64,000 nucleotides of DNA from Mizuhopecten yessoensis (taxonomy: Eukaryota). The position numbers were made by a program, and so were the translations under genes. The notes under the pieces are model-generated. The model was given only the letters and a program-made list of their open reading frames with translations, searched no databases and was not told the DNA's origin. Numbering within the stretch: the first letter of the stretch is position 1; each line of letters begins with the position of its first letter. The stretch spans positions 1 through 64,000 of the forward strand of contig NW_018479974.1 of the NCBI RefSeq assembly GCF_002113885.1, in the 5' to 3' direction. Below are positions 3,573 through 44,814 of the stretch, piece after piece.

Positions 3573-5002
3573 AGTATTAGGTCACATACTTAATTGCACT
3601 TGTGATGGTTTAAAAACAATAAGCCCCTCGGCTGTGATAGTATTATTGGTCTACGATGCGTTTAGTGTAAATTCTGTCTACGGCTGAAGCTAGCCGGGGA
3701 GATTTTAAGTAAAAGTTCTATCCTATCATATTTCTATTCTGTTTTGATGTAATGTAAGTGTTCTGTGCTTTTCTATATTCTAATAAGGGAGCAGATTGCT
3801 TCCAATATTTGACAGCCTCATATTGACTACATCGATGAAATTAATTCCTTATTTCTAAGTAATTCGTATACATGTACTATACAAACATGCATTTGTAAGG
3901 ATCCAGTGTTATGTGAGAATTTTCCTTTGTTGTCACTTCATGGACTAATATGGCAATGTTATATGTACAATAAAAGATATCCAAAACAGCATCTCTATAT
4001 CTGTTCGCACTCACAAATATTGTAAATGATTAACACTACACATTTAACATAATTGAATTCGGTATTACTGTGTTTTCTTATCACTTACATACTTCAAACG
4101 ATGAACTCTTATGTATTCATTCAAGTAAATAAAACTCAATATAAAGATATCTGATAAAACTCATATTTATTCATTCAAGCAAGCACCATGAAATATTTAT
4201 GAAATTAATAAAATTATCAATAATATCCCGTAAAACAAATGTTGTAGCAAATGATGTTGCATAACAAATAAGACAAGCAATACCTACTATACAAAGTGCT
4301 CTTACAGTATATACCGAAGCATCGATAAAATATGCGATTTTTATCACAACAATTCATCCAAAAAACTACTAGCCATCAAAATCTAGGCAAAAGTTCTTTT
4401 AAGCTCCAACATATCTAGTTCATAAAATAGTAATTACAATGTATTACGCCTACAGAATAGTTTATTTCGTTTTTAGCTCTTTTTATTTTANGTCTTACAG
4501 TATATACCGAAGCATCGATAAAATATGCGTTTTTAGCTCTTTTTATTTTATATATTTACATTTGAACTACTTTCATTACACACCGTCAGTCCGAAGTTTA
4601 ATTTTAGATGAAGAGGGACGCTAACTAAAGTTAAATTTCTTAACAAATTAAACGTAAATTATAGTCAGCTACTTATATATTATATCTATGAAAACTCGAT
4701 TGATTAACAGTATAATGAAAATTATGCTCAGTAATAGTAGAGTAATATTTCCTACCCAGTATATAAATAGACTATGTATACAAGGGCTATGCACGCTATA
4801 TGGCTGGGAATGGTGGCAGTTTTTCAAATGTCTCATTACGTTAATTAAATATGCACAATAAGGTGGCATAGTATGTCATTTTCTATATTAATTATCTTTG
4901 CAAAAAATTCTATTCGGATTACATAACAATACTAGAAATAGTTCTTTCATACGGCTTACCTCCCTTACGACGATTACCCCGCCGCATATGATTAAGTGTC
5001 TG

Positions 5003-5862
5003 CTACAAGTGCAAAGCTATATTACGTATTTCACAACACCGACGATTTTCTGTCACAAGTGCATAGCTATATTACGTAATTTCACAACACCGACGATTTT
5101 CTGTCACAAGTGAATGCAGTTGTAGCTATATTACGTGTTTTCACAACACCGACGATTTTCTGTCACAAGTGAATACAGTTGTAGCTATATTACGTATTTT
5201 CACAACACCGACGATTTTCTGTAACAAGTGCATAGCTATGTTACGTATTTTCACAACACCGACGATTCTCTGTCACAATTGCATACAGTTGTAGCTATAT
5301 TACGGATTTTCACAACACCGACGATTTTCTGTCACAAGTGCATAGCTATGTTACGTATTTTCACAACACCGACGATTTTCTGTCACAAGTGAATGCAGTT
5401 GTAGCTATATTACGTATTTTCACAACACCGACGATTTTCTGTCACAAGTGCATACAGTTGTAGCTTTATTACGTGTTTTCACAACACCGACGATTTTCTG
5501 TCACAAGTGCATAGCTATATTACGTTTTTTCACAACACCGACGATTTTCTGTCACAGGTGCATAGCTATGTCACGTATTTTCACAACACCGACGATTTTC
5601 TGTCACAAGTGCATACAGTTGTAGCTATATAACGTATTTTCACTAGACTGACAATTTTCTGTCACAAGTGTATAGCTTTATTACGTATTTTCACAACACC
5701 GACGATTTTCTGTCACAGGTGCATAGCTATGTCACGTATTTTCACAACACCGACGATTTTCTGTCACAAGTGCATACAGTTGTAGCTATGTTACGTATTT
5801 TCACAACACCGACAATTTTTCTGTCACAAGTGCATAGCTATATTACGTATTTTCACAACATC
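5003..5862. repeat. 51/59-bp minisatellite (GTCACAAGTGCATA[CAGTTGTA]GCTATATTACGTATTTTCACAACACCGACGATTTTCT), about 15 units
   Basis: Two length variants differing by an 8-bp indel. It lies about 190 bp 3' of the cGLR stop codon. Confidence 0.95.
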
Positions 5863-6050: not shown

Positions 6051-7347
6051 TCAGGCTTCAACATTATCAAGAAAAGGCTTGATAGCGCATGTGTCCACGT
6101 GTTGGGTCTTGTCCAGCAGTTGTTGAAGGTTGAAGTGCTTCAGAGCCTTTGTAAGATCAGCCCGTACCTGTTGTATCTCCCCATCAGAGCGCTCCTCAAA
6201 CAAGTTCACCACGGGAGTACTCCTGATGTGAAATGCGTAATCTGGGAAAAAGGAACCAAGGCTTGGATTGAAAGAGAAAAATTGTGGTAATTTACTTCTG
6301 GTCAAAGCGCTCTTTAGCATGAAGACCAGATAGCCGAGAGCCTCCGAGACACTTGACAACGACACGGCATTGACCTTGGTCAGACACAGCAGGCTGTGGA
6401 GCAAGACGTTCTTGATGTGGTAAGACGTAAGGACATGGTGAAGCTGTGAGCTACAATTCCGGTCTTTATCCTCGACGCGAAGACCTTTTAGGATTCGTGC
6501 AGCTCGGACAAGACGTTTGCCAGTAACATTTTCGACGCCCCATTTATCAAAAATATGCATTTCAAAATGCGAATGGGACACACGCCAAACCGTAGCGGGA
6601 TCCTGAATACGGACAGTCCGAGTGACGTTTTTAGAGCTTGGAATCCACCGAGTCACCACAAACTTCCTTAATGAGGAGGAGATGGCAGATATCTCGAAGC
6701 CTGGAACGACATCGATGCTGACCATCTGCCCATTTATGATGACATCTAGTTTGATCGCCGGTGCGCTGGCCTGTCTCCTAATATTGAAGGAACTCAAGGA
6801 AGGGTCTTGGTTGAACTTCTGTACTGCTGTGTCGATCAAACCCTTGAAGAGTTTGTCATGGAAAACCTGTGAGCTGACATACCTCTCACCATCTCTCCCT
6901 ACAAACAACTCTACCGGTCGGATGGCCACTTTATTACTTATTTTCTTGATACATATTTCTGCTAAACCCGGAGGCAGATTGTTCTCGGGAGTCTCTATCA
7001 CCTTCGCAGTGATGCCGTCGAAGGTAAAAGGCAGCAATGCATCAAACTCGTTAGCTGCCCCGACCTTCAGACCTTCCCTGGAGCCACCTTGTTTAAGAAA
7101 TGGCTTTAGTCTCAGAAAGGGATGCGTCGATTCAGCACGCTTAAGCTCTGTGTATAAACTCTTCAGCAGCTGATCAATTTGCACTTGTACACCTTGGAAA
7201 CTTGCACCCCTAATGTTGACGTTGTCATCGTAAAATCGCTTCAACTCCTTGTCCTCTGGTCCACACCAAACAGAATCATCGTTAGAGGGAGGTAACCAAC
7301 AGTTGGGAGCGCTCACACCATGCGCATACCAAGCGTCGCCATTTCCA
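6051..7347 (-). CDS. Mab-21/cGAS-like receptor (cGLR) nucleotidyltransferase, coding exon 2 (main exon)
   Basis: Motifs: QGGSREGLKVGAANEFD (hG[GS]...E-x-D, same spacing as cGAS GSYYEHVKISAPNEFD), SIDVVP (third acidic residue), WRVSHSHFE (cGAS WRLSFSHIE), LTSYHIKNVLLH (cGAS SSYHVKTAFFH) and LPQFF...VNLF. Splice acceptor ttttAG at 7349-7348. The frame is open from 7347 to TGA at 6053-6051. Confidence 0.92.
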
Positions 7348-7609
7348 CTAAAACGTAAAAAGCTTTAGCATGAATATACAGTTACCATGACTAGTAAAGA
7401 ATATGCATTATCATCTAGCTAGTGTCCTCCCAGAAGCAAGTACGTTGAAGCTTTGACCTCAAATTCAATAGCAGTCCATTATTCCAAATGATGATTAATT
7501 AACAGATATCAGTGTTGCAAACGCATCATATTTTTCGAGCAAGGAAATGTTTGTGTTTGTATTACATATTTATAAGAATACTGTCATGCAAATAATCACC
7601 ATATATTAA

Positions 7610-8851
7610 TAAGCTCACCTGGTCCAAAGGACCAAGGTGTGCTTATGCCATACCGTGGCGTCCGTCGTCCATCCGTCCGTCCGTCCGTCGTCCGTCCGTC
7701 AACAATTTCTTTAAACGACTTCTTCTTCTTAACCACTGATTGGAATTTAACTTAATTTGACTGGAAACATCCCTAGGTGGTGGGGATTCAAAATTGTACA
7801 AATGGTGGGGCTGAGGGGCGGTGCAAAAAGGGGGCAATTTGGCTAAACTGCTTTAAGCGACTTCTTCTCTGGAACTAAGTGATGGATATCAACCATATTA
7901 GACTGGAAGCATCCCTAGGTGGCGGAGATTCAAAATTGTACAAATGGTTGGGCTGACCCCCAAGGGGGCTGAGGGGCGGGGCCAAAAAGGGGTAATTTGG
8001 CTATATTACTACAAACGACTTCTTCTGTAGAACTATGCATTGGATATCAATCATATTAAATCAAAAGTATTCATGGGATGCAGGGATTCAAAATTGTACA
8101 AATGGTGGGGCTGACCTCCCAGGGGCTATATTGCTTTAAGCGACTTCTTCTCTGGAACTAAGTGATGGATATCAACCATATTAGACTGGAAGCATCCCTA
8201 GGTGGTGGGGATTCAAAATTGTACAAATGGTGGGGCTGACCCCCAGAGGGCTTAGGGCGGGGCCAAAAGGGGGCAATTTGGCTAGATTGCTATAAACGAC
8301 TTCTTCTGTAGAACTATGCATTGGATATCGATNAGATCCCCACCCCAAAACTATATATACAAATGCTGGGCATAAAGAGACGAATGCAGTCACAATATCA
8401 GAATAGACCCTCGGTCTGACCGAAACCCTAGGGACCTAGTTTCTTAGTCACAGCTTGGAAACAGTTGAGATCCCCGACCTATAACCATATAGACATTTGC
8501 TGAGTATAAAGAGATGAATGCACATATGCTTCCAGGATGGCCTTGGGGACTGCCCCAACCTTGGAGACTTAACCCCTGGGTCATAACTTTGAAACGGTTG
8601 AGATCCCCACCCCAAAACTATATACACAACCGTAGGGACCAAGTTTCTGAGTCACAGATTGGAAACAGTTGAGATCCCCACCCCATAACCATACATAAAA
8701 TTGCTGGGCATGAAAAATCGAATACAGATATATATGCTACAAGGATTGGCCTTGGGGTCTAGCATATTCCCATGGATCTCATTTGGAGAATATTCTGCCA
8801 TGATTGCTTAGATATCCAGGTGAGCGATACAGGCCCAATGGGCCTCTTGTT
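7610..8851 (+). mobile_element. Helentron-associated non-autonomous element (HINE/pearl/DINE-1-like) in cGLR intron 1
   Basis: 5' subterminal AGCTCACCTG, (GTCC)n microsatellite, internal tandem core repeats, 3' CAGGTGAGC, then hairpin AGGCCCAATGGGCCT and TTGTTT. The internal repeat type changes at the N at 8333. Confidence 0.75.
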
Positions 8852-8921
8852 TAATACGCAATACAAGGTTAAGTTTTTATGTACTCAACAATCCTGGACA
8901 AAGAACTTATATAAATACGAT

Positions 8922-9990
8922 AACTGGTCCCAGTTGTTATGTACACACGATACCAGGTCCCTGTTAGTATTTACGCACGATACCAGGTCCCAGGTAGTAT
9001 TTACACACGATATCAGGTCCCAGTTAGTATTAACGCACGATACCAGGTCCCTGTTAGTATTTACGCACGATACCAGGTCCCTGTTAGTATTTACGCACGA
9101 TACCAGGTCCCTGTTAGTATTTACGCACGATACCAGCTCCCAGGTAGTATTTACACACGATACCAGGTCCCAGTTAGTATTTACACACGATACCAAGTCC
9201 CAAGTAGTATTTACACACGATACCAGGTCCCAGTTAGTATTTACGCACGATACCAGGTCCCAGTTAGTACTTACACACGATACCAGGTCCCAGTTAATAT
9301 TTACGCACGATACCAGGTCCCAGTTAGTATTTACGCACGATACCAGGTCTCAGTTAGTATTTACACACGATACCAGGTCCCAGGTAGTATTTACACACGA
9401 TATCAGGTCCCAGTTAGTATTTACGCACGATACCAGGTCCCAGTTAGTATTTACACACGATACCAGGTCCCAGTTAGTATTTATACACGATACCAGGTCC
9501 TAGTATTTACACACGATACCAGGTCCCAGGTAGTATTTACACACGATACCAGGTCCCAGGTAGTATTTACGCACGATACCAGGTCCCAGTTAGTATTTAC
9601 ACACTATATCTGGTCCCAGTTACTATGTACACACGATGCCTGGTCCCAGTTGTTATGTACACACGATACCAGGTCCCAGTTATTATGATCACACTATACC
9701 TGGTCCCAGTTGTTATATTTAAACGATACCTGGTCCCAGTTGTTATGTACAAACGATATCACTCTGGTCCCAGTTGTAATGTACACACGATATCAATCTG
9801 GTCCCAGTTATTATGATCACACTATATCTGGTCCCAGTTGTTATGTACACAGGACATTTGGTCCCAGTTGGTATGCACACACGATACCTGGTCCCAGTGG
9901 TTTATATATATGATCACACTATATTTGGTCCCAGTTATTATGTACACACGATATCTGGTCCCAGTTGTTATGTACACCTGGTCCCGGATG
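8922..9990. repeat. 30-bp minisatellite (CACGATACCAGGTCCCAGTTAGTATTTACA) in cGLR intron 1
   Basis: Homogeneous central units with diverged edge units. Confidence 0.95.
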
Positions 9991-10573
9991 TTTATAAACA
10001 CGATATCTTGTCCACTCGAAATTAACTAGTTTCTATTTGATATTGCGTATTATTCGACACATCGTTGTAGTCTGCAGATGAACGTTACTTCTACGTATGT
10101 ACGTAAGTTTTAAGTGACAAATATGTGCATTTTGTTGTGTATATTAAAACGCTTTCATTCATTGAAATGAACTACTAGGCTAGCTACCACGTGTACAGTC
10201 GTTCATGGTTAGCGTCATTTACGGTGCCTCTGAAGTGATATGTACAACGCTACTTCTGTAATAGTATTAGATATAAAAAGCACAGAATTATACTAATAAG
10301 TAATAAAAGCTTAAAAGAACACATAGGTGGCTGAATATCCCGCCATACACAGTATTATTATTCTTTCCATACAATAACAAGTTCTTCACACTGACAACAT
10401 ACTAGCAATTTCAGTTTTTAGTATATATCCGCATGTTTAGCGAGGTTGTCGTTACGCTAGATCTATTTTGTATTAGTCTATTGTTAGCTTTTTAACCCTG
10501 ACGTCTAATATGTATGCACTGCAAAAATTGCACGACTTCTGTGACGGGAAATCTATACCGTTTTACTCGGATG

Positions 10574-10583
10574 GGGATTTTCC
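10574..10583 (+). promoter_or_regulatory. NF-kB-type site GGGATTTTCC in cGLR intron 1
   Basis: Exact match to GGGRNWYYCC, about 350 bp into intron 1. Confidence 0.4.
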
Positions 10584-10935
10584 TTAAATGAAGGGATCCT
10601 AACACTAAACAAATAATGCAGTCAGAAATTCCAACTCTGAACGGTACCGGTGCACACGCCATGCACGTGCACACTTCTGTCTACATTATGTGTAGACCGG
10701 TTAGGTGTAGCAGACGCATAAATGCATACATCATCGTTACTCCAGGCGCAACATGGTCCCTGTATCTATGACATTATTTGGTGTTTTCTTGAAATGCAGT
10801 CTGGTTTCGATGGGATTGCCAGTAACCTGGCTTGTCAAAGTTACTCCTACAATCAACTGTACAATTAATTTACCACGTGTCTCTACGATAAGGACCTTAA
10901 ATGCCTGTCTCCTCCAACCCAATAACTTGACTCAC

Positions 10936-10946
10936 CTGTCCGCCAT
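10936..10946 (-). CDS. cGLR coding exon 1 (11 coding nt: ATG GCG GAC AG)
   Basis: Good Kozak context (GCG ATG G) and an in-frame TGA 9 nt upstream. The donor AG|GTGAGT is a perfect consensus. Phase 2 matches the acceptor at 7347 (AG+T = Ser), giving MADSGNGDAWYAHGVSAPNCW... Confidence 0.8.
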
Positions 10947-11011
10947 CGCTGCTCAGCTTTGTTCAATGGATGCTCTCCACGTTGTGCATCAGGTGATATG
11001 CATTAGGTGAT

Positions 11012-11351
11012 AACGAAACCAAAAGTAGATCGTCTACCTCCTTCTGGGAAACCGAAATCTCTTTCTGGAAAAACGAATCCACCTGTTACTGGTTAGCCTG
11101 CTTCAAAGCTCCAACGCTCCTTTCTTCATGTAAAAAAAACTGTTAGGCCAGTGTACATTGAAATAAAAACACAAAGATCAGCACACCCGAAGGCAGTGAG
11201 TCAGTACGACACGAGACTGATTCAGAGTTTCGTCATCTTCAAATATATTTGTGGTCCTGCTTCTTATTAAGAGCTGAATAAAAAAAATCTTTCTGTATGT
11301 TAGTTTCACTCAACATCATTTGTGACGTCAAAATTCTTTGGAATGACGTCA
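11012..11351 (-). promoter_or_regulatory. Candidate immune-inducible promoter of the cGLR (IRF-E/ISRE, GAS, AP-1, 2x CRE)
   Basis: Plus-strand text: AACGAAACCAAAAGT 11012-11026; TTCTGGGAA 11042-11050 overlapping GGGAAACCGAAA 11046-11057; degenerate copy TTCTGGAAAAACGAA 11063-11077; TGAGTCA 11197-11203; TGACGTCA 11323-11330 and 11344-11351. Confidence 0.6.
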
Positions 11352-11890
11352 CAGAGCGAAAGACAAGGTCATAGGGTAAAGTGGCAGTGAGTCGGACACG
11401 ATATAAAGTCGGACACTTTCTTTGTTGTTTTATGTGGTTTTCTATCCTTACAATCCGGTCTTTTCCTGTAGCTATGCTAACAAGCTTCTTATGAACATAT
11501 AATTAACTTTCTTTGGTTACTAATACCCTTCCTGTCTTTTTCAATACGGTCCCAGAGAAGTCCAGACAGCGGGAATTTTGAGCTAACCCAAATAAGAATT
11601 GTTCAATTAATGATACGGCTGGGATTTGATAAAGCTCTTGCATGATGAGAAAAGAATATACTGAAAAGAAAGTTATTTTCTAGACATTTTAAAGCATTTT
11701 CTAACTGGTGTTTTGTTTTTCAAGTTTAAACAAAAGTACCCAATTCGATATTGAATCGGACACAAAAATATGTGTGTATATGTGTGATATTAAGTCGACC
11801 CCTGTCCGACTCAACATCATGTTTCATTTATATTGTCTAATTGACTTCAAATAGATCGTTTGTTGTAGTTAGACTGGTGTTTTAAACAGA

Positions 11891-12658
11891 TTTAGACAAA
11901 ACGATCCTCTATTTCAAACATGGAAGTATTACGATAACAAAGTATATAACGCTTCTGCATCAATTTCTGTGCCTTATATGCCCATCTTTTCCTCGCCGCC
12001 ACCATTTCCAGCTATGATGCCCATCTCTTCCTCGCTGACACCACTTCCAGCTATGATGCCCATCTCTTCCTCGCCGCCACCACTTCCAGCTATGATGCCC
12101 ATCTCTTCCTCGCTGCCACCACTTCCAGCTATGATGCCCATCTCTTCCTCGCTGCCACCACTTCCAGCTATGATGCCCATCTCTTCCTCGCTGCCACCAC
12201 TTCCAGCTTCGTTGCCCATCTTTTCCTCGCTGCCACCACTTCCAGCTTCGTTGCCCATCTTTTCCTCGCTGCCACCACTTCCAGCTTCGTTGCCCATCTC
12301 TTCCTTGCTGTCCACGCTGTCCAAATCATTGTCTGTTTCTCCAAAACTTCCTATCCCGCCAGTACAACAAGCTCTGTCGTCATCAGCCTCTTCAGTTGGC
12401 AATACACTGTTTCCGTTACCCAAATTAACAAAGAAAAGACCAGCACAGGAATATTTTGTAATAACGGCAGATGATATATTTGACCAACGGAAGAAAGCGT
12501 CTGAATTAAAAATTATACAGGAACTAATTAAGAAGGAATAACGTTTAGAATGTGAAAAGAAAAGAGCAGCAAAAGCACTTGCCGTTACCAATAAGGGAAG
12601 TGGACGTGGATGTGGTCGTGGTCGTTGACGTGGACGCGGGAAAGGTCCGACAAAATGA
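11891..12658 (+). pseudogene. C-terminal remnant of a pogo-like transposase
   Basis: The frame reads FRQNDPLFQTWKYY...[P/S-rich repeat]...LFPLPKLTKKRPAQEYFVITADDIFDQRKK...KKE*RLECEKKRAAK...GRGCGRGR*RGRGKG. This resembles the tail of invertebrate pogo/DDE_1 transposases (recognised from memory, not searched). Two in-frame stops and no DDE core. Confidence 0.6.
11978..12304. repeat. 39-bp in-frame tandem repeat (13 codons, MMPISSSLPPLPA), about 8 units
   Basis: Direct periodicity inside the transposase remnant. Confidence 0.9.
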
Positions 12659-12877
12659 CCTGATATGAACTCTAAACAGAGAATAAATACATAATGGTTT
12701 CCGTTAATTTGTAATTGAAACTTTTGCTTTGTTTAACGTGTATATAGATCTGTATTGTGTAAAATGTGTTCATTGATCAGACATTATTATTTCGCAGCTT
12801 TATTACCAATAATGTACGCACTACAATAAAACGTGTTTTGTTTTGCGCATATTTCACCTTAGTGATAATGTAGTATA

Positions 12878-13475
12878 CAGTTATAGAATGGGTATGAGGG
12901 AAATAGCACATTTATGGTGAAAATTGCCACCGATGAAGGCCGTTTTGTTGTTGTAAAGAGGAGTTACAGCAGATTTTGGACGCTAAACGTAGCTTAAATA
13001 CAAAAGCTGTTATAAAGACTGCAGTGAATCCAGAACGGAATGCTGGAGGCGTCGACGAGTAGGGTCATGCAAGCTCTTTTAAAAAAAGTAGATAGGACTA
13101 GATCTAGATATGGTAGGGAAACAAATGATGACTATGAGATTCAGTCTATAAAAACACTTCTTGAATGCTAGAAAAATAAAGATATCATCAACGACGATGC
13201 ATACAGTACTTCCAATTGTAATTTTTCTCTTTCAGTCTTTGAAATTGTAAAAGGAAATGAATACATAAATTCATTTGTACAATTGCCTTTACTGGGTGAA
13301 TAATTTGTTTGGTTATAATAAAACAGTTATAGAATGGGTAATTCGGGAAAAAGCAAATTTATGGTCACCCTTGGTGAAAAACTATTGCCCTCGACGGCTT
13401 CGCCTCCTCGGGAAATAGTTTTTCACCTCGGGGTATCATACATATGCTATTTCCCTCATACCCATTCTATAACTG
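12878..13475. mobile_element. MITE nested in the pogo-like element
   Basis: TIRs CAGTTATAGAATGGGTATGAGGGAAATAGCA / TGCTATTTCCCTCATACCCATTCTATAACTG, flanked by TA(TA). A third, degenerate TIR copy lies near 13323. Confidence 0.8.
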
Positions 13476-16261
13476 TATAATACACCATGTCAGTTTCTAC
13501 TCCGACAGTCCCTATCCTCTTCCAGGTTCGTTGTAATTCTCTATCTTGGCGAGTATAATATTGGATCTAGTAAAATGGAAAACTAAACGAATTATATAAA
13601 GCTCGCCAACATTAATAGACTACTCATTTACACAAAAATTAAATAACAATGTTGGTAAGATGAAGACAACTCCGAAACAGTAACGTAAATCATACCTTTT
13701 AATGGTAGAGGGTGGTTCCAATAGCACAAGCTACAGTAACTACGGTGAAATAGGTCTTGACAAGTGATTGCACTCAAGATTTTGTAATAAATAATAATTT
13801 CTGCGAAAATGAAGTCAAGATGCCTGTACAACAAAAGAAAGTTAAGTAAAACAATGGAAAGAGCCGTGAAATACATTTAAAAAGTCAATAATTTGAACGA
13901 GAACATTCTTGCTTTTGGTCATCTGGAGACTGTCCGATTCTATATCACAAGGTAAATCAGGTGTCCGACTCAATATAGAAAGCGTCCGACTCACTATCAA
14001 ATTGCCATTTTGCGATTCGTTTCGTTTTGTCTTACGCTATATGATGGAAGGAGAAGAGTTCCGAGAAGCATTTGAAAGAGAAAAACGTAGACTATCGGAC
14101 GATATCCATTGCATTACGGTAGGTTATATAGAACGAAAGCAATTTGAGTTTTAACAGAGGAGGTGTCCGACTCACTGTCACTTTACCCTAAATGTGATGA
14201 GCTTCGACTTTTAGTAACAATGTAATACACAGTTCATCCACCGTCGTCTAGATACAAACTTTGATTCAGGCCATATAGGCCCTACACTAAAATATGGTTT
14301 CTATCGGTTTACTGCCAGATGGGCCATATATGTCATGTTTTAAAAATTGGAAAGTGTGCAATCGAATAAACGATTTATGTTACATATTAAATAACATTTC
14401 TTGTTTTTTGAACAATCAGTCTGTTTTAAAATTGGGTAAATGTAATATGTTTTAATTCATGTTGTAATCTTCGACATGGCCGAATACCAAAGACAAATCT
14501 AATTTTAAAGGTTAACGTGCTCCGCTGTTTTTTTACCAACAGCAAATTACAACCGTAAAAACACCCGCTGTTTAGTGTGTTTACAGCAGCGTGTCAAAAC
14601 TTGGGTTAAATAAACCTGAAACTATTTCAGTTCAGTTAAATTCTTTACATGTACTACCTTAAGCCTTACGGTTCAAAAAAGATCTCACACACACGCCCAC
14701 ACAAATAATTAGCAACGAGACCCTCCTCGTTACCTTCAAACATCTTATTGCTCAATTCAATACATTTTGCTAAATATTGTTCCCCGTTATCATAGCTTGA
14801 ACAAATGAACATGCTAGGAACAGAGACTTACATATCAATATTAATATTAATATATATATAATATATTTAATATACTGTAATATATACGTCTCTGCTAGGA
14901 ATGTTAAAGTAATGTTTCTTAATTAAATACATCTTCGCTGTCACCACTGATGCGGCATGCACATGTCCTTTCCATCCTTATAAATTACTAACCAACCAAT
15001 TAAAATTTTCAATTTATACAGATGTGTGTAGCTGGACTGTAAACGATGCGCATGCAAAGTTATCATCAATAGAAAATAGCTATCCTGGAGGGAGGGTCCG
15101 GCCCCTTCCATCCCCATCCCGAAAAATAACGAAACATACATGTAAGCTCTGTGATGCTATCCGATGTTTTTTAAGAACAATATTTGGGCGTTTAATTCGT
15201 TCAATATTTAGGTCAAACCAGCATGTTGATGTTTCATCAAATAATTCAATCATAAACTTGCTATATCGGTATCCAGTACCGTAGATTTTTAGCCGAATAC
15301 CACAGTAATACCGATCGTGTTCTTATACGAAAATCTATGGTTTATGATAGTGAACGTAAATAGCTGAACACATTTTTTTACCAAATTAAATACGAATTAA
15401 ATCACACATATTTTTTATGAGGATTTGTCTACATGGCAGCTACCCGCATTCTCGATTGCTTTCCTTCCCAACAGACATCATGTACATGTTTTTCCCATCG
15501 TTTCTGGGGATTGTCTTTCCTGTTATTGTCATTTTCTATTAATTTGACTTACAATTTTGTCCACGTGTGTTGATGATGTGGTATAGATTTTTGTTATTTT
15601 ATTTCAACTTTCTGTAAGTAGTCCTCAACACACCAACATCAATCAGTTTCACGCCTACATATAAATCGCCCTTAACGTCTGATGTAAAAACATTTACCTC
15701 TCTATAGACAGTCAAAATTGCGCAATAATTCTCAACATGGTGACATGTATCCAAAGTGCTCAACAGGACAACGGCAGAAGTACTCTGTATCCACCTCACA
15801 AAACCTCTATAGGTTCCAAGTTTAATAAAAAATGTCGAAAACAATCCTGTAAAACTGCTTTATTTGAGTAACGAACACAATTTAATACACTCCCTTTAAA
15901 CAACATACTCAAGTCAAATACATTATAACACAGGTATCTTAACATTCTTTCTTTTGTTTATTTTCACCTTTGAGGTCTTTACTTGAAATAACCCATTCAT
16001 CATCACCAAAGTATAAACGAATCTAAACTTCTGTAGCTTTTGTGAGCCATATTTGTTTTTCTGTTCCTTAATCTGTTTTACTTTTTTAAATAGAATTTAT
16101 ATAGATTGGGAACTAAACTGGACTGTGAAATAAATATAATTCCAGTTATTTAATTGAAAAGAGATTACACACTTTTCAAAAAGTAAAATGACTAGTTTAT
16201 ATATTTATATTTAAAATGACACAAATGTTTTTGTTACTAACATCTAACTTTCAAAAAAAAA

Positions 16262-39373: not shown

Positions 39374-40738
39374 ATCATCATCTATAACAACAACAAAGTT
39401 ATACCAATGTAGCAGCATCGTCAAACAGCAGAATCACAAAGACGTTTTCAAGAAAGTATAATTCTGAATACGGGTTTTTGGATCATTCAAAATTATACAT
39501 TACCATTCTCCAAGAATATCACTACGCTTTGTTATTGCTTCATTTTCCATTTGTATTTTAAAGCGCGATAAGAGATATGAAGTAAAGCGTGAACAAATTC
39601 ACATAATTGTGTTTTTCAAATTGAATTCAGCAACAGAGCAATTATTATGCTTCTGGCCCAAACTTGGGAAGAATAGTTAGGGGCATATTGATAAGTAGGC
39701 TGAAATCTGTGCACATGTTTAAATTGAAACATCATTCAGATTTACTACGTAAAAGTGACAACGTTGATTGTGAAAGACAAAAGAACCCAGTGATTTGAAG
39801 TGTATCCTGAACGGAAATAGTAATGAATACATCATTTATCAATATGATCAAAATGTCGAAAGCGCATAAAAAAGGCTGTGACGTCACAAGTTCAACGACT
39901 GTGCCATACAGTGTCATAGAGCGAATTAACATCAGTTTTGAGATTACACTTTAAATTTTATGCTACATTTTTACGCAGTGGTAAATTATATTTATCTCGA
40001 GAATATATTTGAATAATGTGATTATTTTTTTTATACATTTTGGTTCAATAATGAATATCATCTCGATCCAACCCTTAGCCTTAGGTGTGACGTCACACCT
40101 GTGTTCAGTTCGGACAACAGGATGCCACAACTTTGTACCTGTGTCCATGTATACGTATGACGTCAAAGAGATGTCAGCAGGTGGCAAAGGGGTACCTGAT
40201 GTTAGAACAATGTACTTAGATTATGTGTTTTCCAAATTTCCATTTAACAACAATGTCCCCAGGCTAGAAAACGGGAAAATGCATAAGGAGCGATTTCAAG
40301 GTAAATATGCATAAATGAATTGCGTAAGTTGATCATAAACTAATACAGTTCATAGATACAACCTGTTCATTAAACCTTATTACAAAACTTATTTCCATGA
40401 CCATGGATACAGTTACATGTTACTTACATGTTTGCAGTGTACCAAGGGACAATATAAACGAACTTGCCATAATCACATGCAATATAAAATATAAAGTATA
40501 AAGATGAAATTCATAAAATTGATGATGCTGTTTTTCAGGTGTTTTTAGTCCTATCATATTTAAGGGGAGGTTTTTCTATAGAGACTAGGAAACGAAAGTG
40601 AGAAGGCAGAGGAATGTGAACAAAATGCATGGATAAGGAATAAACATAACTTTAACCGTATCGTTGAACTCAGAGTCTCGACACGAAAGATTAAGATGGA
40701 TATTGGAGAGATGTATTGATTGAAATGGGAAGTCTGCA

Positions 40739-43012
40739 AGATGGAACGGTGGAGGTGGATGTAGTGGGGACGGAGAGAGGGAGTTGGAGATGGAACGATG
40801 GAGATGGATGTAGTTGGGATGGAGAGAGGGAGTTGGAGATGGAACTATGGAGATGGATGTAGTGGGGACGTAGAGAGGGAGTTGGAGATGGAACAATGGA
40901 GGTGGATGTATTGGGGACGGAGAGAGGGAGTTGGAGATGGAACGTTGGAGATGGACGTAGTGGGGACGGATAGAGGGAGGTGGAGATGGAACGATGGAGG
41001 TGGATGTAGTGGGGACTGAGAGATGGAGTTGGAGATGGAACGGTGGAGATGGATGTAGTTGGGACGGATAGAGGGAGGTGGAGATGGAACGATGGAGGGG
41101 GATGTAGTGGGGACGGATAGAGGGAGGTGGAGATGGAACGATGGAGGTGGATGTAGTGGGGAATGAGAGAGGGAGTTGGAGATGGAACGATGGAGTGGAG
41201 GTGGATGTAGTGGGGACGGATAGAGGGGGTTGGAGATGGAACTATGGAGATGGATGTAGTGGGGACGTAGAGAGGGAGTTGGAGATGGAACGATGGAGAT
41301 TGATGTAGTGGGGACGGAGAGAGGGAGTTGGACATGGAACGATGGAGATGGATGTAGTTGGGATGGAGAGAGGGAGTTGGAGATGGAACGATGGAAGTGG
41401 ATGTGCTCGGGACGGAGAGAGGGAGTGGGAGATGGAACGATGGAGATTGATGTAGTGGGGACGGAGAGAGGGAGTTGGAGATGGAACGTTGGAGATGGAC
41501 GTAGTGGGGACGGATAGAGGGAGGTGGAGATGGAACGATGGAGGTGGATGTAGTGGGGACAGAGAGAGGGAGTTGGAGATGGAACGGTGGAGATGGACGT
41601 AGTGGGGACGGATAGAGGGAGGTGGAGATGGAACGATGGAGGTGGATGTAGTGGGGAATGAGAGAGGGAGTTGGAGATGGAACGATGGAGCTGGATGTAG
41701 TGGGGACGGAGAGAGAGAGTTGGAGATCGAACGATGGAGGTGGAAGTAGTCGGGACGGAGAGAGGGAGTTGGAGATGGAACGTTGGAGATGGACGTAGTG
41801 GGGACGGATAGAGGGAGGTGGAGATGGAACGATGGAGGGGGATGTAGTGGGGACGGAGAGAGAGAGTTGGAGATCGAACGATGGAGGTGGAAGTAGTCGG
41901 GACGGAGAGAGGGAGTTGGAGATGGAACGGTGGAGATGGACGTAGTGGGGACGGATAGAGGGAGGTGGAGATGGAACGATGGAGGTGGATGTAGTGGGGA
42001 ATGAGAGAGGGAGTTGGAGATGGAACGATGGAGGTGGATTTAGTCGGGACGGAGAGAGGGAGTTGGAGATGGAACGGTGGAGATGGACGTAGTGGGGACG
42101 GATAGAGGGAGGTGGAGATGGAACGATGGAGGTGGATGTAGTGGGGACTGAGAGATGGAGTTGGAGATGGAACGGTGGAGATGGATGTAGTTGGGACGGA
42201 TAGAGGGAGGTGGAGATGGAACGATGGAGGGGGATGTAGTGGGGACGGATAGAGGGAGGTGGAGATGGAACGATGGAGGTGGATGTAGTGGGGACGGACA
42301 GAGGGAGGTGGAGATGGAACGATGGAGGTGGATGTAGTGGGGAATGAGAGAGGGAGTTGGAGATGGAACGATGGAGATTGATGTAGTGGGGACGGAGAGA
42401 GGGAGTTGGACATGGAACGATGGAGATGGATGTAGTTGGGATGGAGAGAGGGAGGTGGAGATGGAACTATGGAGATGGATGTAGTGGGGACGTAGAGAGG
42501 GAGTTGGAGATGGAACAATGGAGGTGGATGTATTGGGGACGGAGAGAGGGAGTGGGAGATGGAACGATGGAGATTGATGTAGTGGGGACGGAGAGAGGGA
42601 GTTGGAGATGGAACGGTGGAGATGGACGTAGTGGGGACGGATAGAGGGAGGTGGAGATGGAACGATGGAGGTGGATGTAGTGGGGAATGAGAGAGGGAGT
42701 TGGAGATGGAACGATGGAGTGGAGGTGGATGTAGTGGGGACGGATAGAGGGTGTTGGAGATGGAACTATGGAGGTGGATGTAGTGGGGACGTAGAGAGGG
42801 AGTTGGAGATGGAACAATGGAGGTGGATGTATTGGGGACGGAGAGAGGGAGTGGGAGATGGAACGATGGAGATTGATGTAGTGGGGACGGAGAGAGGGAG
42901 TTGGACATGGAACGATGGAGATGGATGTAGTTGGGATGGAGAGTGGGAGATGGAGATGGAACTATGGAGATGGATGTAGTGGGGACGGAGAGAGGGAGTT
43001 GGAGATGGAACG
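40739..43012. repeat. 49-bp purine-rich minisatellite (GATGGAACGATGGAGGTGGATGTAGTGGGGACGGAGAGAGGGAGTTGGA), about 46 units
   Basis: Direct periodicity with extreme G/A strand skew. Confidence 0.96.
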
Positions 43013-44814
43013 ATTGTGATATGGAGATGAGAGATGAAGAGTGATGGAAATGGTGAGATTGAAAGAACGAGTAACGGAGATGGAGAGATGAGATGGAGAG
43101 AAAGAAAAGAGATAGATTTGAAGACGGAGACGGAAAGAAATCTTGGATGGCGATTTGAAGATGAAGAGAGGTTAGGAGAGAGAGAAAAGTGGAGAGGTTT
43201 TCTCTCTGACCTTCAATGTGTCTGTGGCCTCCAGAAACAATGGAGTAAAGTTGATGCGTTGACGTGCTTACGGAAACCATCTCTAGTCCAATATCTTTTT
43301 GCTGGCATTCACTTTCCCCTTGAACAGGGTTTTAATTTTTTAACGCTACGTAAAAAATCGAATGCTTCCAGACGTGTATGTACATTTCAACAAGGGCGCA
43401 ATGACATTTCAACTGATCTGTTTTCCCATTTGACGTCACCACTGGTATATGTTTTATTTGAATTACGTCATTACTGCAGAGCGAGTCTGTGGCAGTATTG
43501 ATTCTGTATCTAAAACCTTCATGGGCACCAAGGTTTCAGCGACTGCATTTGAGGATTGGATATGTTTATGCTGTTGCTCTTATTCCAGTAAAAACCAACA
43601 TGGGAGAATAGCTGCAGCTACCCCAATAAGATTCGGCCAGCATAGCGTAACACCAATTCAAAAGGGAAAGCTGTTCGGGATGGTCCTGATGTACGCATTA
43701 CTTACATTTATATTTCTCTTCTATTCCTCCTAGTCTAGTACTATATTGTGATAACAATAATACTTTAAAATGCAGTTTTGTATACAGAGCTATTTATTTA
43801 CTTAAGTATTAGAACAAAACTTGGATTATAAAAGACAGTGGTAGTACATGCATTTCAGCATTCCCCAATGGTTCTAGATATTGGACAACCAGTCAGGATA
43901 CGTCAGACCCCATTAGCTTAGAGTTAACCAGTGGTTAGGGGGAAATTTCAAATAATGAATACACCATAATAAAAAAAATCTTATATCATTTTCAAAATTG
44001 TTATACATTAGCATATTATTGAGACAAATCAGAATAATGTGTTTTGAGGATTTAGTTTGCATTGGAAGCCCTTGCTTCTTATTGGCAATAATTTGAATAT
44101 TTCAATAACCACTGGTTAAACATTTACCGACCTTTGAGCACCATGGATTGCTAACATTTATTGAAAACTCAATAGAGTCACCACGCTAACGAACCCTTTT
44201 ATACATGAAGTTGACGTTCGTTTATGTTTCAGAGCATCACCCCGGAGCTATAACTGCCCATGGCCGTTTTCGTTTAAACGGTCAAACCGGTCGGACCACT
44301 GTTGTTCGTTTATTAAATAAGGTCGGACCTAGTAATCTGATGCTGCTTTCAGGCGACTCTCTACAAAGCTTTGCAAGGCCTGCATAAACATTTGCAGGTC
44401 CGCCAGGATTTATACCGGAAAATGTTACATTTATAAACGGTCAAACCGGTTGTTCCGCATAAACGAACAGGCCCCAGGTTATACCGAAGGAAGATGAAGA
44501 GCCCGTATGTATTATCCTATACCAACTGGTGATTTGAAGAAAATGAAATAAACGTATTGGTGTTGTGTCATCACCTCCGTTGATTTAAAACTCTTAAGCC
44601 AATTCACAAATGACAAACCCATCGAAAGTTTTAAAATGGAAACGTTGCTTACGTAGGAGCTATTGATCGTGTGCCGTAAGCGGCTGTGCACTCCCAAGCA
44701 ATTGTTCGAATATTTAATACAGACTTTGAATGTCTTGGAGTACTATGCTTAACGTATATAACCTACATGTTGTAATTCCTAAGGAACAATACAAATTTGG
44801 TTTAGCATTGTAAT

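Follow-up and report, generated by a model that had tools for sequence, protein, structure and literature searches.

Positions 11012-11351 of the 64,000-nt stretch of Mizuhopecten yessoensis DNA analysed here (the window) hold a set of sequences resembling the control elements of vertebrate interferon-stimulated genes (ISGs), just upstream of what a first-pass annotation took to be a gene for a cGAS-like receptor (cGLR). The question raised by this locus is whether the segment is the promoter of such a gene and, if so, which of its elements and which factors are likely to control it.

The gene downstream is M. yessoensis LOC110441867, located on the minus strand, with a database protein (P0001) of 435 aa. 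It consists of the following parts:

10936..10976, minus strand: exon 1 in its minimal extent, from contigs of runs X2, X4 and X7
7342..10935, minus strand: intron 1, phase 2, from the sequence and spliced contigs
6051..7341, minus strand: coding part of exon 2 including the stop codon, encoding the Mab-21 nucleotidyltransferase and Mab-21_C domains

The ATG of exon 1 lies at 10946-10944 and opens 11 coding nt, the last base of which, 10936, is followed by a GTGAGT donor. Exon 2 begins at 7341 after a TTTTAG acceptor, with the frame joined in phase 2, and runs to the stop codon at 6051. The N-terminus of P0001, MADSGNGD, agrees with what this two-exon model predicts. Contigs from X2, X4 and X7, which come from three studies, all leave the window at 10936 with an overhang that matches, in reverse complement, the opening 30 bases of exon 2. 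Because these contigs run from 10936 into exon 2, the splice between the two exons and the RNA origin of the contigs are proven, so that the ATG exon, originally an inference from the letters, is real. In run X4, exon 1 extends to 11326 or beyond.

The protein searches were done with exon 2 itself, and P0001 served as the full-length stand-in for the two-exon model. In exon 2, Pfam detects PF03281 (6.9e-9, 36.5 bits) and PF20266 (7.6e-7, 29.6 bits), both above the cut-offs. A single-protein phmmer search against the PDB gave no match, and a profile of the nine-member family was required to reach PDB 8gjy, 'cGAS-like receptor 1', which it matches over almost the full length. The predicted active site (GGS at residues 91-93, E104-F-D106 and D216) is invariant in 9/9 family members and aligns to the corresponding residues of the 8gjy cGLR1. 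Given the Mab-21 domains, the profile match and the invariant catalytic residues, the LOC110441867 protein is, as judged from its sequence, a cGAS-like receptor with an intact catalytic triad, in agreement with the first-pass assignment. In word-based protein searches the subfamily was found in scallops only; homologues outside the scallops, which were sought in order to carry the promoter footprint to oysters, did not appear, and the same nine proteins were recovered. The locus names of the gene are not mentioned in the papers searched.

The M. yessoensis genome carries a close duplicate of this gene on contig C2220, a more distant paralogue on C76705 and a distant Mab-21 cluster on C3577. 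In the C2220 cGLR (protein P0002, C2220:13829-15256), ~56 residues of the nucleotidyltransferase region are duplicated internally, and the gene may be a decaying copy. Intron 1 of the window gene contains a satellite with a period of roughly 30 bp at ~8900-10030, which is also found in the C2220 duplicate (C2220:8640-13470) and has grown there to nearly 5 kb. Another tandem repeat, at window 5000-5860 just 3' of the gene, is common to the window and C2220, and the X4 contig stops at its edge (5825).

The elements 5' of the ATG are as follows, with those at the top nearest to the gene:

11012..11026, minus strand: proximal ISRE-like site, core at 11015-11024, 69-78 nt 5' of the ATG
11042..11057, minus strand: composite GAS/ISRE, TTCTGGGAAACCGAAA, 96-111 nt 5' of the ATG
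11063..11077, minus strand: degenerate tandem copy of the composite, with TTCN2GAA spacing and two mismatches to the ISRE core
11197..11203, unstranded: AP-1 consensus TGAGTCA, by sequence reading
11323..11330, unstranded: proximal CRE palindrome, TGACGTCA, with the 5' end of the long X4 contig (11326) inside it
11344..11351, unstranded: distal CRE palindrome, TGACGTCA, 18 nt 5' of the end of the long contig
11371..11886, unstranded: multi-copy, transposon-like repeat of ~515 bp, at the start of an insertion relative to C2220

By direct reading, every motif that the first-pass annotation named is present where it was placed, and the distance it gave for the GAS/ISRE region, 66-130 bp upstream, is correct for an ATG on the minus strand at 10946-10944. 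In the composite, a GAS palindrome (TTCN3GAA, 11042-11050) overlaps the 12-mer GGGAAACCGAAA (11046-11057). This 12-mer had been called the core of the ISG15 ISRE, and it is indeed included in the standard ISG15 ISRE oligonucleotide (PMC2677155). Measured against the ISRE consensus used here (GAAANNGAAA, or (A/G)NGAAANNGAAACT in its extended form), the composite has a perfect core at 11048-11057. The proximal core at 11015-11024 reads GAAACCAAAA in the reference allele, with one mismatch to the consensus, and becomes a perfect core, GAAACCGAAA, in the X4 contig through an A>G change at 11021; the proximal site is therefore represented by a natural allele pair, a one-mismatch and a perfect ISRE core. 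The third site, at 11063-11077, is weak as an element: it is adjoined by a 22-nt insertion in C2220 and is unrecognisable in the Ylistrum promoter alignment. Exact matches to the composite pattern number one in the window and 2,231 in the 987.6-Mb genome, which corresponds to ~0.14 expected per 64 kb and 4.5e-4 per 200-bp promoter. As for the factors that could bind such sites, IRF DNA-binding domains were found at four loci or more in this genome and STAT DNA-binding domains at two or more, as the first-pass annotation had expected for a mollusc.

The 5' boundary of the promoter can be set at 11373, where a 2.8-kb insertion (11373-14189) relative to the C2220 duplicate opens with the ~515-bp repeat. 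Copies of this repeat at 87-96% identity are found on at least seven other contigs, and homology to C2220 resumes at 14189-14269. Inside the inserted segment, at 11969-12541, there is a 39-bp tandem repeat with ORFs on both strands (190 aa and 205 aa).

Conservation was assessed in two groups of promoters. Group A consists of the window gene, its C2220 duplicate and the orthologue in Ylistrum balloti. With blastn, the window aligned to the Y. balloti orthologue over exon 2 and 33 bases around the ATG, and nothing else matched 5' of exon 1. Within the Ylistrum promoter, the composite TTCNNNGAAANNGAAA fits the 16-nt pattern exactly, in unchanged orientation, and is followed after a 16-nt spacer (17 nt in the window) by a second ISRE with an identical TCTAC before it. 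The module of composite and second ISRE is present in Y. balloti as a tandem duplicate ~225 bp upstream, and both copies match the 16-nt pattern. The C2220 promoter is 83.6% identical to window 10586-11373; its composite has one change, and each of its two ISRE cores has one mismatch. The TTCN3GAA half is kept in 4/4 group A promoter copies, and the adjoining bases differ. In an alignment of the window, C2220 and both Ylistrum copies (A3), the best-conserved 20-column windows are centred on 11012-11026, so that the proximal ISRE-like site is the best-conserved element of the group A promoters. No TATA box was found in group A promoters. An ACGTG core lies at window 10975-10986 and at the matching places in the Ylistrum group A promoter and in C2220, the latter with a complete CACGTG.

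Group B is represented in M. yessoensis by the C76705 paralogue (P0005), with 56% protein identity to the window gene. Here an ISRE that reads TTTCGGTTTCG along the gene precedes a canonical TATAAATA by 15 nt, and the ATG is ~80 nt beyond, in a 5-nt coding exon with the same phase as in the window gene. The arrangement of ISRE and TATA box is unchanged in the group B orthologues of Pecten maximus and Ylistrum balloti. When the promoters of the three species were aligned over 347 columns, invariant runs of five or more positions were confined to both halves of the ISRE, the TATA block, the ATG and its donor, and a CACGTC motif. Group B-like transcript contigs of a further scallop start just 3' of the position of the TATA box, with a leader of ~57 nt (L039/L040), and the group B ISRE therefore lies upstream of the start. 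The GAS was absent from the Pecten and Ylistrum group B promoters. The CACGTC/ACGTG core, which is conserved between the TATA box and the ATG (L033, L036, L037), is a possible bZIP or bHLH site. In both P. maximus and Y. balloti, the group B cGLR is flanked by genes for Ro60 (TROVE) and a P5A-type ATPase (L036, L037), a case of conserved synteny.

The AP-1 and CRE sites had been read as further parts of the promoter, and here the comparison gave a different result. The AP-1 site and the distal CRE are kept in C2220, and the proximal CRE is lost there. With a background identity of 84%, an 8-mer survives by chance in about one case in four, so the sharing of these sites with C2220 is uninformative. 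Neither AP-1 nor CRE sites are present within 600 bp of the ATG of the Ylistrum orthologue, and conservation of either beyond the recent duplicate was not found. Conservation at the orthologous promoter, on which the first-pass annotation had staked its reading in advance, is thus divided. The ISREs are conserved in alignments A2 and A3 across three genera (Mizuhopecten, Pecten and Ylistrum) and two paralogue groups, at orthologous and paralogous promoters alike and between flanks that cannot be aligned; the GAS is conserved in group A only; and AP-1 and CRE are not conserved. As far as comparison of promoters goes, the ISRE part of the interpretation is well supported, and support for the GAS part is confined to group A.

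How these sites would act depends on the position of the transcription start. One contig from X2 and one from X7, runs of two different studies, stop at 10976, 30 nt 5' of the ATG. A start at this position would place the motifs at -36 to -101, with the proximal core (11015-11024) at -39 to -48. Contig ends do not prove true starts, however. Both contigs are also interrupted within exon 2, so that the end they share may be a polymorphism rather than a start. The transcript contigs of other scallops have short leaders, with 52 nt of 5' UTR in a group A-like case (L038) in addition to the group B-like leaders given above. A long leader at the window gene would include seven upstream ATGs, with 11003 and 10989 the positions closest to the gene, and a start at 10988 or nearer to the gene would leave the leader clean.

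The X4 contig gives another picture. Its 1,908 nt begin at 11326, cross every one of the ISRE, GAS and AP-1 sites without a break and continue into exon 2 and on to 5825 in the 3' UTR, at the highest depth of the three runs, so that at least some transcripts carry the motifs in their 5' UTR. No polyadenylation signal (AATAAA) was found near its 3' end, and the contig stops at the tandem repeat; its ends are therefore not transcript ends. It could be argued from this contig that the real promoter is formed by the two CREs at 11323-11351, which lie directly on the 3' side of the transposon insertion. The ISRE and GAS would then lie in a long 5' UTR at about +250 to +310. There they might work as a downstream or intragenic element, if they work at all, or owe their conservation to some RNA-related cause. 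The 5' end of the contig is only 18 nt 3' of the distal CRE, and two CREs at a distance of 21 bp are more than would be expected for an 8-mer with 1.16 expected occurrences in the whole window, where six are found. This reading is nevertheless unlikely. It would burden the gene with the seven upstream ATGs, and it is at odds with the 52-57-nt leaders of orthologous and paralogous transcripts in other scallops, with the position of the group B ISRE 5' of a canonical TATA box, with a Ylistrum orthologue lacking both CRE and AP-1 and with the loss of one CRE in C2220. The distal CRE may instead be part of an upstream alternative start, and it is possible that the gene has two promoters, a minor CRE-associated start upstream and an ISRE-associated proximal one. 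The other four CRE palindromes of the window lie at 39879-43438, where the GC skew is very strong (40-44 kb; ~0.6), and this region is probably a repeat array.

The explanation that we consider probable is that the segment is the proximal promoter of a scallop-specific cGLR gene, with an ISRE pair as its functional core through which IRFs would induce the gene. The core would consist of two IRF-type sites 16-17 nt apart, the upstream one overlapping a GAS-like palindrome. When nucleic acid is sensed, signalling through cGLR/STING/TBK1 or RLR/MAVS, the routes described in oysters, would activate scallop IRFs. Bound to the ISRE pair, these would increase transcription that begins ~30-60 nt 5' of the ATG, and the sensor would in this way be induced by the pathway that it feeds, in a feed-forward arrangement. 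The AP-1 and CRE sites would not be required, and the CRE pair would at most serve the minor upstream start.

Several lines of evidence argue for this explanation. The group A footprint keeps the composite, the second ISRE and the spacing between them in promoters that are otherwise unalignable. The invariant runs of group B include the ISRE halves, at a genomic frequency of one ISRE core per ~7.3 kb. The short leaders, the shared end at 10976 and the leader free of upstream ATGs hint at a proximal start, and the X4 allele restores a perfect proximal core. The IRF loci of the genome and the bivalve IRF and cGAS findings cited below point the same way, and the division of runs into those with nearly complete and those with almost no exon 2 fits switch-like expression. 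Counted against it are the passage of the X4 contig through the motifs, the lack of a TATA box in group A, the one-mismatch sites in the reference and in C2220 and a genome-wide enrichment of the ISRE core that is modest.

The last point comes from scans of the whole genome with each pattern and its reversed control. The ISRE core GAAANNGAAA gave 135,932 matches against 94,282 for the control (ratio 1.44), the extended 13-mer 71 against 42 (ratio 1.7) and the fused composite 2,231 against 1,183 (ratio 1.9). The composite with a second ISRE within 8-30 nt gave 8 matches, the same number as its control (ratio 1.0). The fused form makes up 1.6% of the ISRE cores (2,231/135,932), which is about the frequency of a random TTC at that position.

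These numbers bear on the proposal of the first-pass annotation that the fused GAS-ISRE marks a wider regulon. A regulon defined by the strict two-element module was rejected on its 8 matches against 8, and one defined by the fused element was not convincing, since its 1.9-fold excess falls to ~1.3-fold after correction for the ISRE core, which on its own is in 1.44-fold excess. Enrichment of the GAS with the ISRE was not seen genome-wide, where the fused pattern occurs at the chance rate. Because the fused share of ISRE cores is about that of a random TTC, the fused element as the mark of a regulon is not supported by the genome-wide counts.

The same numbers weigh on the fuller version of that proposal, in which IRF and STAT co-occupy the fused GAS-ISRE in an ISGF3-like or GAF-plus-IRF1-like manner, AP-1 and CREB/ATF contribute as well, and the fused element is the mark of a wider antiviral regulon. 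We regard this as quite unlikely. The TTCN3GAA half is retained throughout group A despite its differing neighbours, STAT DNA-binding domains are encoded, and composite sites of ISRE and GAS are known in vertebrates with spacing from 0 bp (PMC10287828). Set against these points are the group B promoters of Pecten and Ylistrum, which do without a GAS, a composite no commoner than an ISRE core with a random TTC, a two-element module at the level of its control, and AP-1 and CRE sites that are conserved no further than the recent duplicate. Molluscs are not known to have an interferon, IRF9 or STAT2, and an ISGF3 complex can for that reason not be assumed in the scallop. The narrower claim, that the fused GAS-ISRE, with its spacing to the second ISRE kept between scallop genera, is a joint site for STAT and IRF, is highly doubtful. 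If it were true, ISGF3-like or GAF-plus-IRF control of antiviral sensors would predate vertebrate interferons and would operate in lophotrochozoans.

Another alternative concerns the identity of the bound factor. An IRF need not be the protein that binds the conserved GAAA-repeat elements: a zinc-finger protein of the PRDM1/Blimp type or of another kind, among others, could do so, and the elements would then set tissue-specific or basal expression rather than antiviral induction. Conservation speaks for constraint and does not identify the binding factor. Runs within one study contain either almost the complete exon 2 (0.93-0.95) or hardly any of it (0.00-0.04), which fits switch-like expression and could equally reflect tissue. 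We consider a factor of this kind very unlikely, however, given the agreement of the sites with the IRF consensus and the presence in the composite of 12 bases that open the ISG15 ISRE core. Sites of this type are also recognised by bivalve IRFs, and a bivalve cGAS homologue is inducible by poly(I:C).

Control of the gene by IRFs would have several precedents. Mammalian ISRE and IFN-beta reporters respond to oyster IRF2 and IRF8 (PMC5557890), CgIRF1 and the scallop CfIRF1/2 are reported to bind the ISRE (PMC13524488), and poly(I:C) causes a 13-fold increase in oyster CgcGAS, which belongs to a cGAS/STING-TBK1-IRF axis (PMC8218723). The cGLR families of bivalves are expanded (bioRxiv 10.1101/2023.02.22.529553). 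The nearest parallel is therefore the oyster IRF-ISRE axis (CgIRF1/2/8 and the CgIFNLP promoter), in which ISRE reporters respond to the IRFs of another bivalve and poly(I:C) induces a cGAS homologue (PMC5557890, PMC8218723, PMC13524488). The oyster work differs in having used mammalian ISRE reporters or the CgIFNLP promoter and not the own ISRE of a cGLR gene, and no endogenous ISRE of any cGLR gene is described in the papers searched. The proteins differ as well: CgcGAS is reported to have zinc fingers (PMC8218723), whereas the scallop protein is without them, with two Mab-21 domains as the only Pfam hits, and belongs to a subfamily that the searches recovered from scallops only.

Vertebrate promoters offer parallels of a different kind. 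As in vertebrate ISG promoters, the ISRE lies within ~100 nt of the start codon or start site, and the scallop composite contains the 12-nt core of the ISG15 ISRE oligonucleotide. The overlap of a GAS half-site with the scallop ISRE resembles the vertebrate ISRE and GAS composites, whose spacing starts at 0 bp (PMC10287828); the scallop element, a predicted site, differs in that its fused form is not enriched in the scallop genome.

Mammalian cGAS (MB21D1) is itself an interferon-stimulated gene with ISREs in its promoter, a sensor induced by the pathway that it triggers. The scallop gene would share with it the combination of a nucleotidyltransferase sensor and ISRE-driven positive feedback, if the loop proposed here operates. 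It differs in being a lineage-specific cGLR and not an orthologue of cGAS.

The scallop promoter would be a further well-defined case of a known kind of control, expected and not new, and it leaves the current picture unchanged, IRF-ISRE control and an inducible cGAS homologue having already been reported in oysters. What is new is an endogenous ISRE pair, conserved across genera, that adjoins a lineage-specific cGLR, together with a second module of ISRE and TATA box adjoining a paralogue. Studies of the 'interferon-like' response of bivalves have relied mostly on mammalian reporter elements. The ISRE pair and the ISRE-TATA module provide short native targets for work on scallop IRFs and a testable lophotrochozoan case of cGLR feed-forward control.

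ISRE matches elsewhere in the genome were also inspected. Among 30 sites with the extended 13-mer, a TATA-like element within 40 nt was found downstream in six and on the other side in three, which is not significant at a background of 17%, and a Pfam scan of 10 ORFs near such sites returned nothing informative. The Mab-21 cluster on C3577 (33% identical) was considered and set aside: the ISRE-core matches found up to 1.3 kb from its ATG exons belong to a minisatellite and give no promoter information, and its true first exons are non-coding. Two sites on this contig, C3577:717954 and C3577:823511 (L079, L080), each carry a triple GAAAC-repeat ISRE with the extended 13-mer in homologous contexts and are duplicates of each other; both fall within the 116-kb stretch of C3577 that carries the distant Mab-21/cGLR cluster. 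Perfect extended ISRE pairs 44 bp apart are found in two duplicated units on C3955 (1029809/1029853 and 1057986/1058030; L083-L086). Their flanks resemble those of the proximal site in the window, and the ORFs 650 nt away have no Pfam match. At C4422:272591 (L043:2700), the extended ISRE 13-mer in the form of the X4 allele lies ~1 kb 5' of an exon encoding an IRF DNA-binding domain, which could reflect IRF autoregulation.
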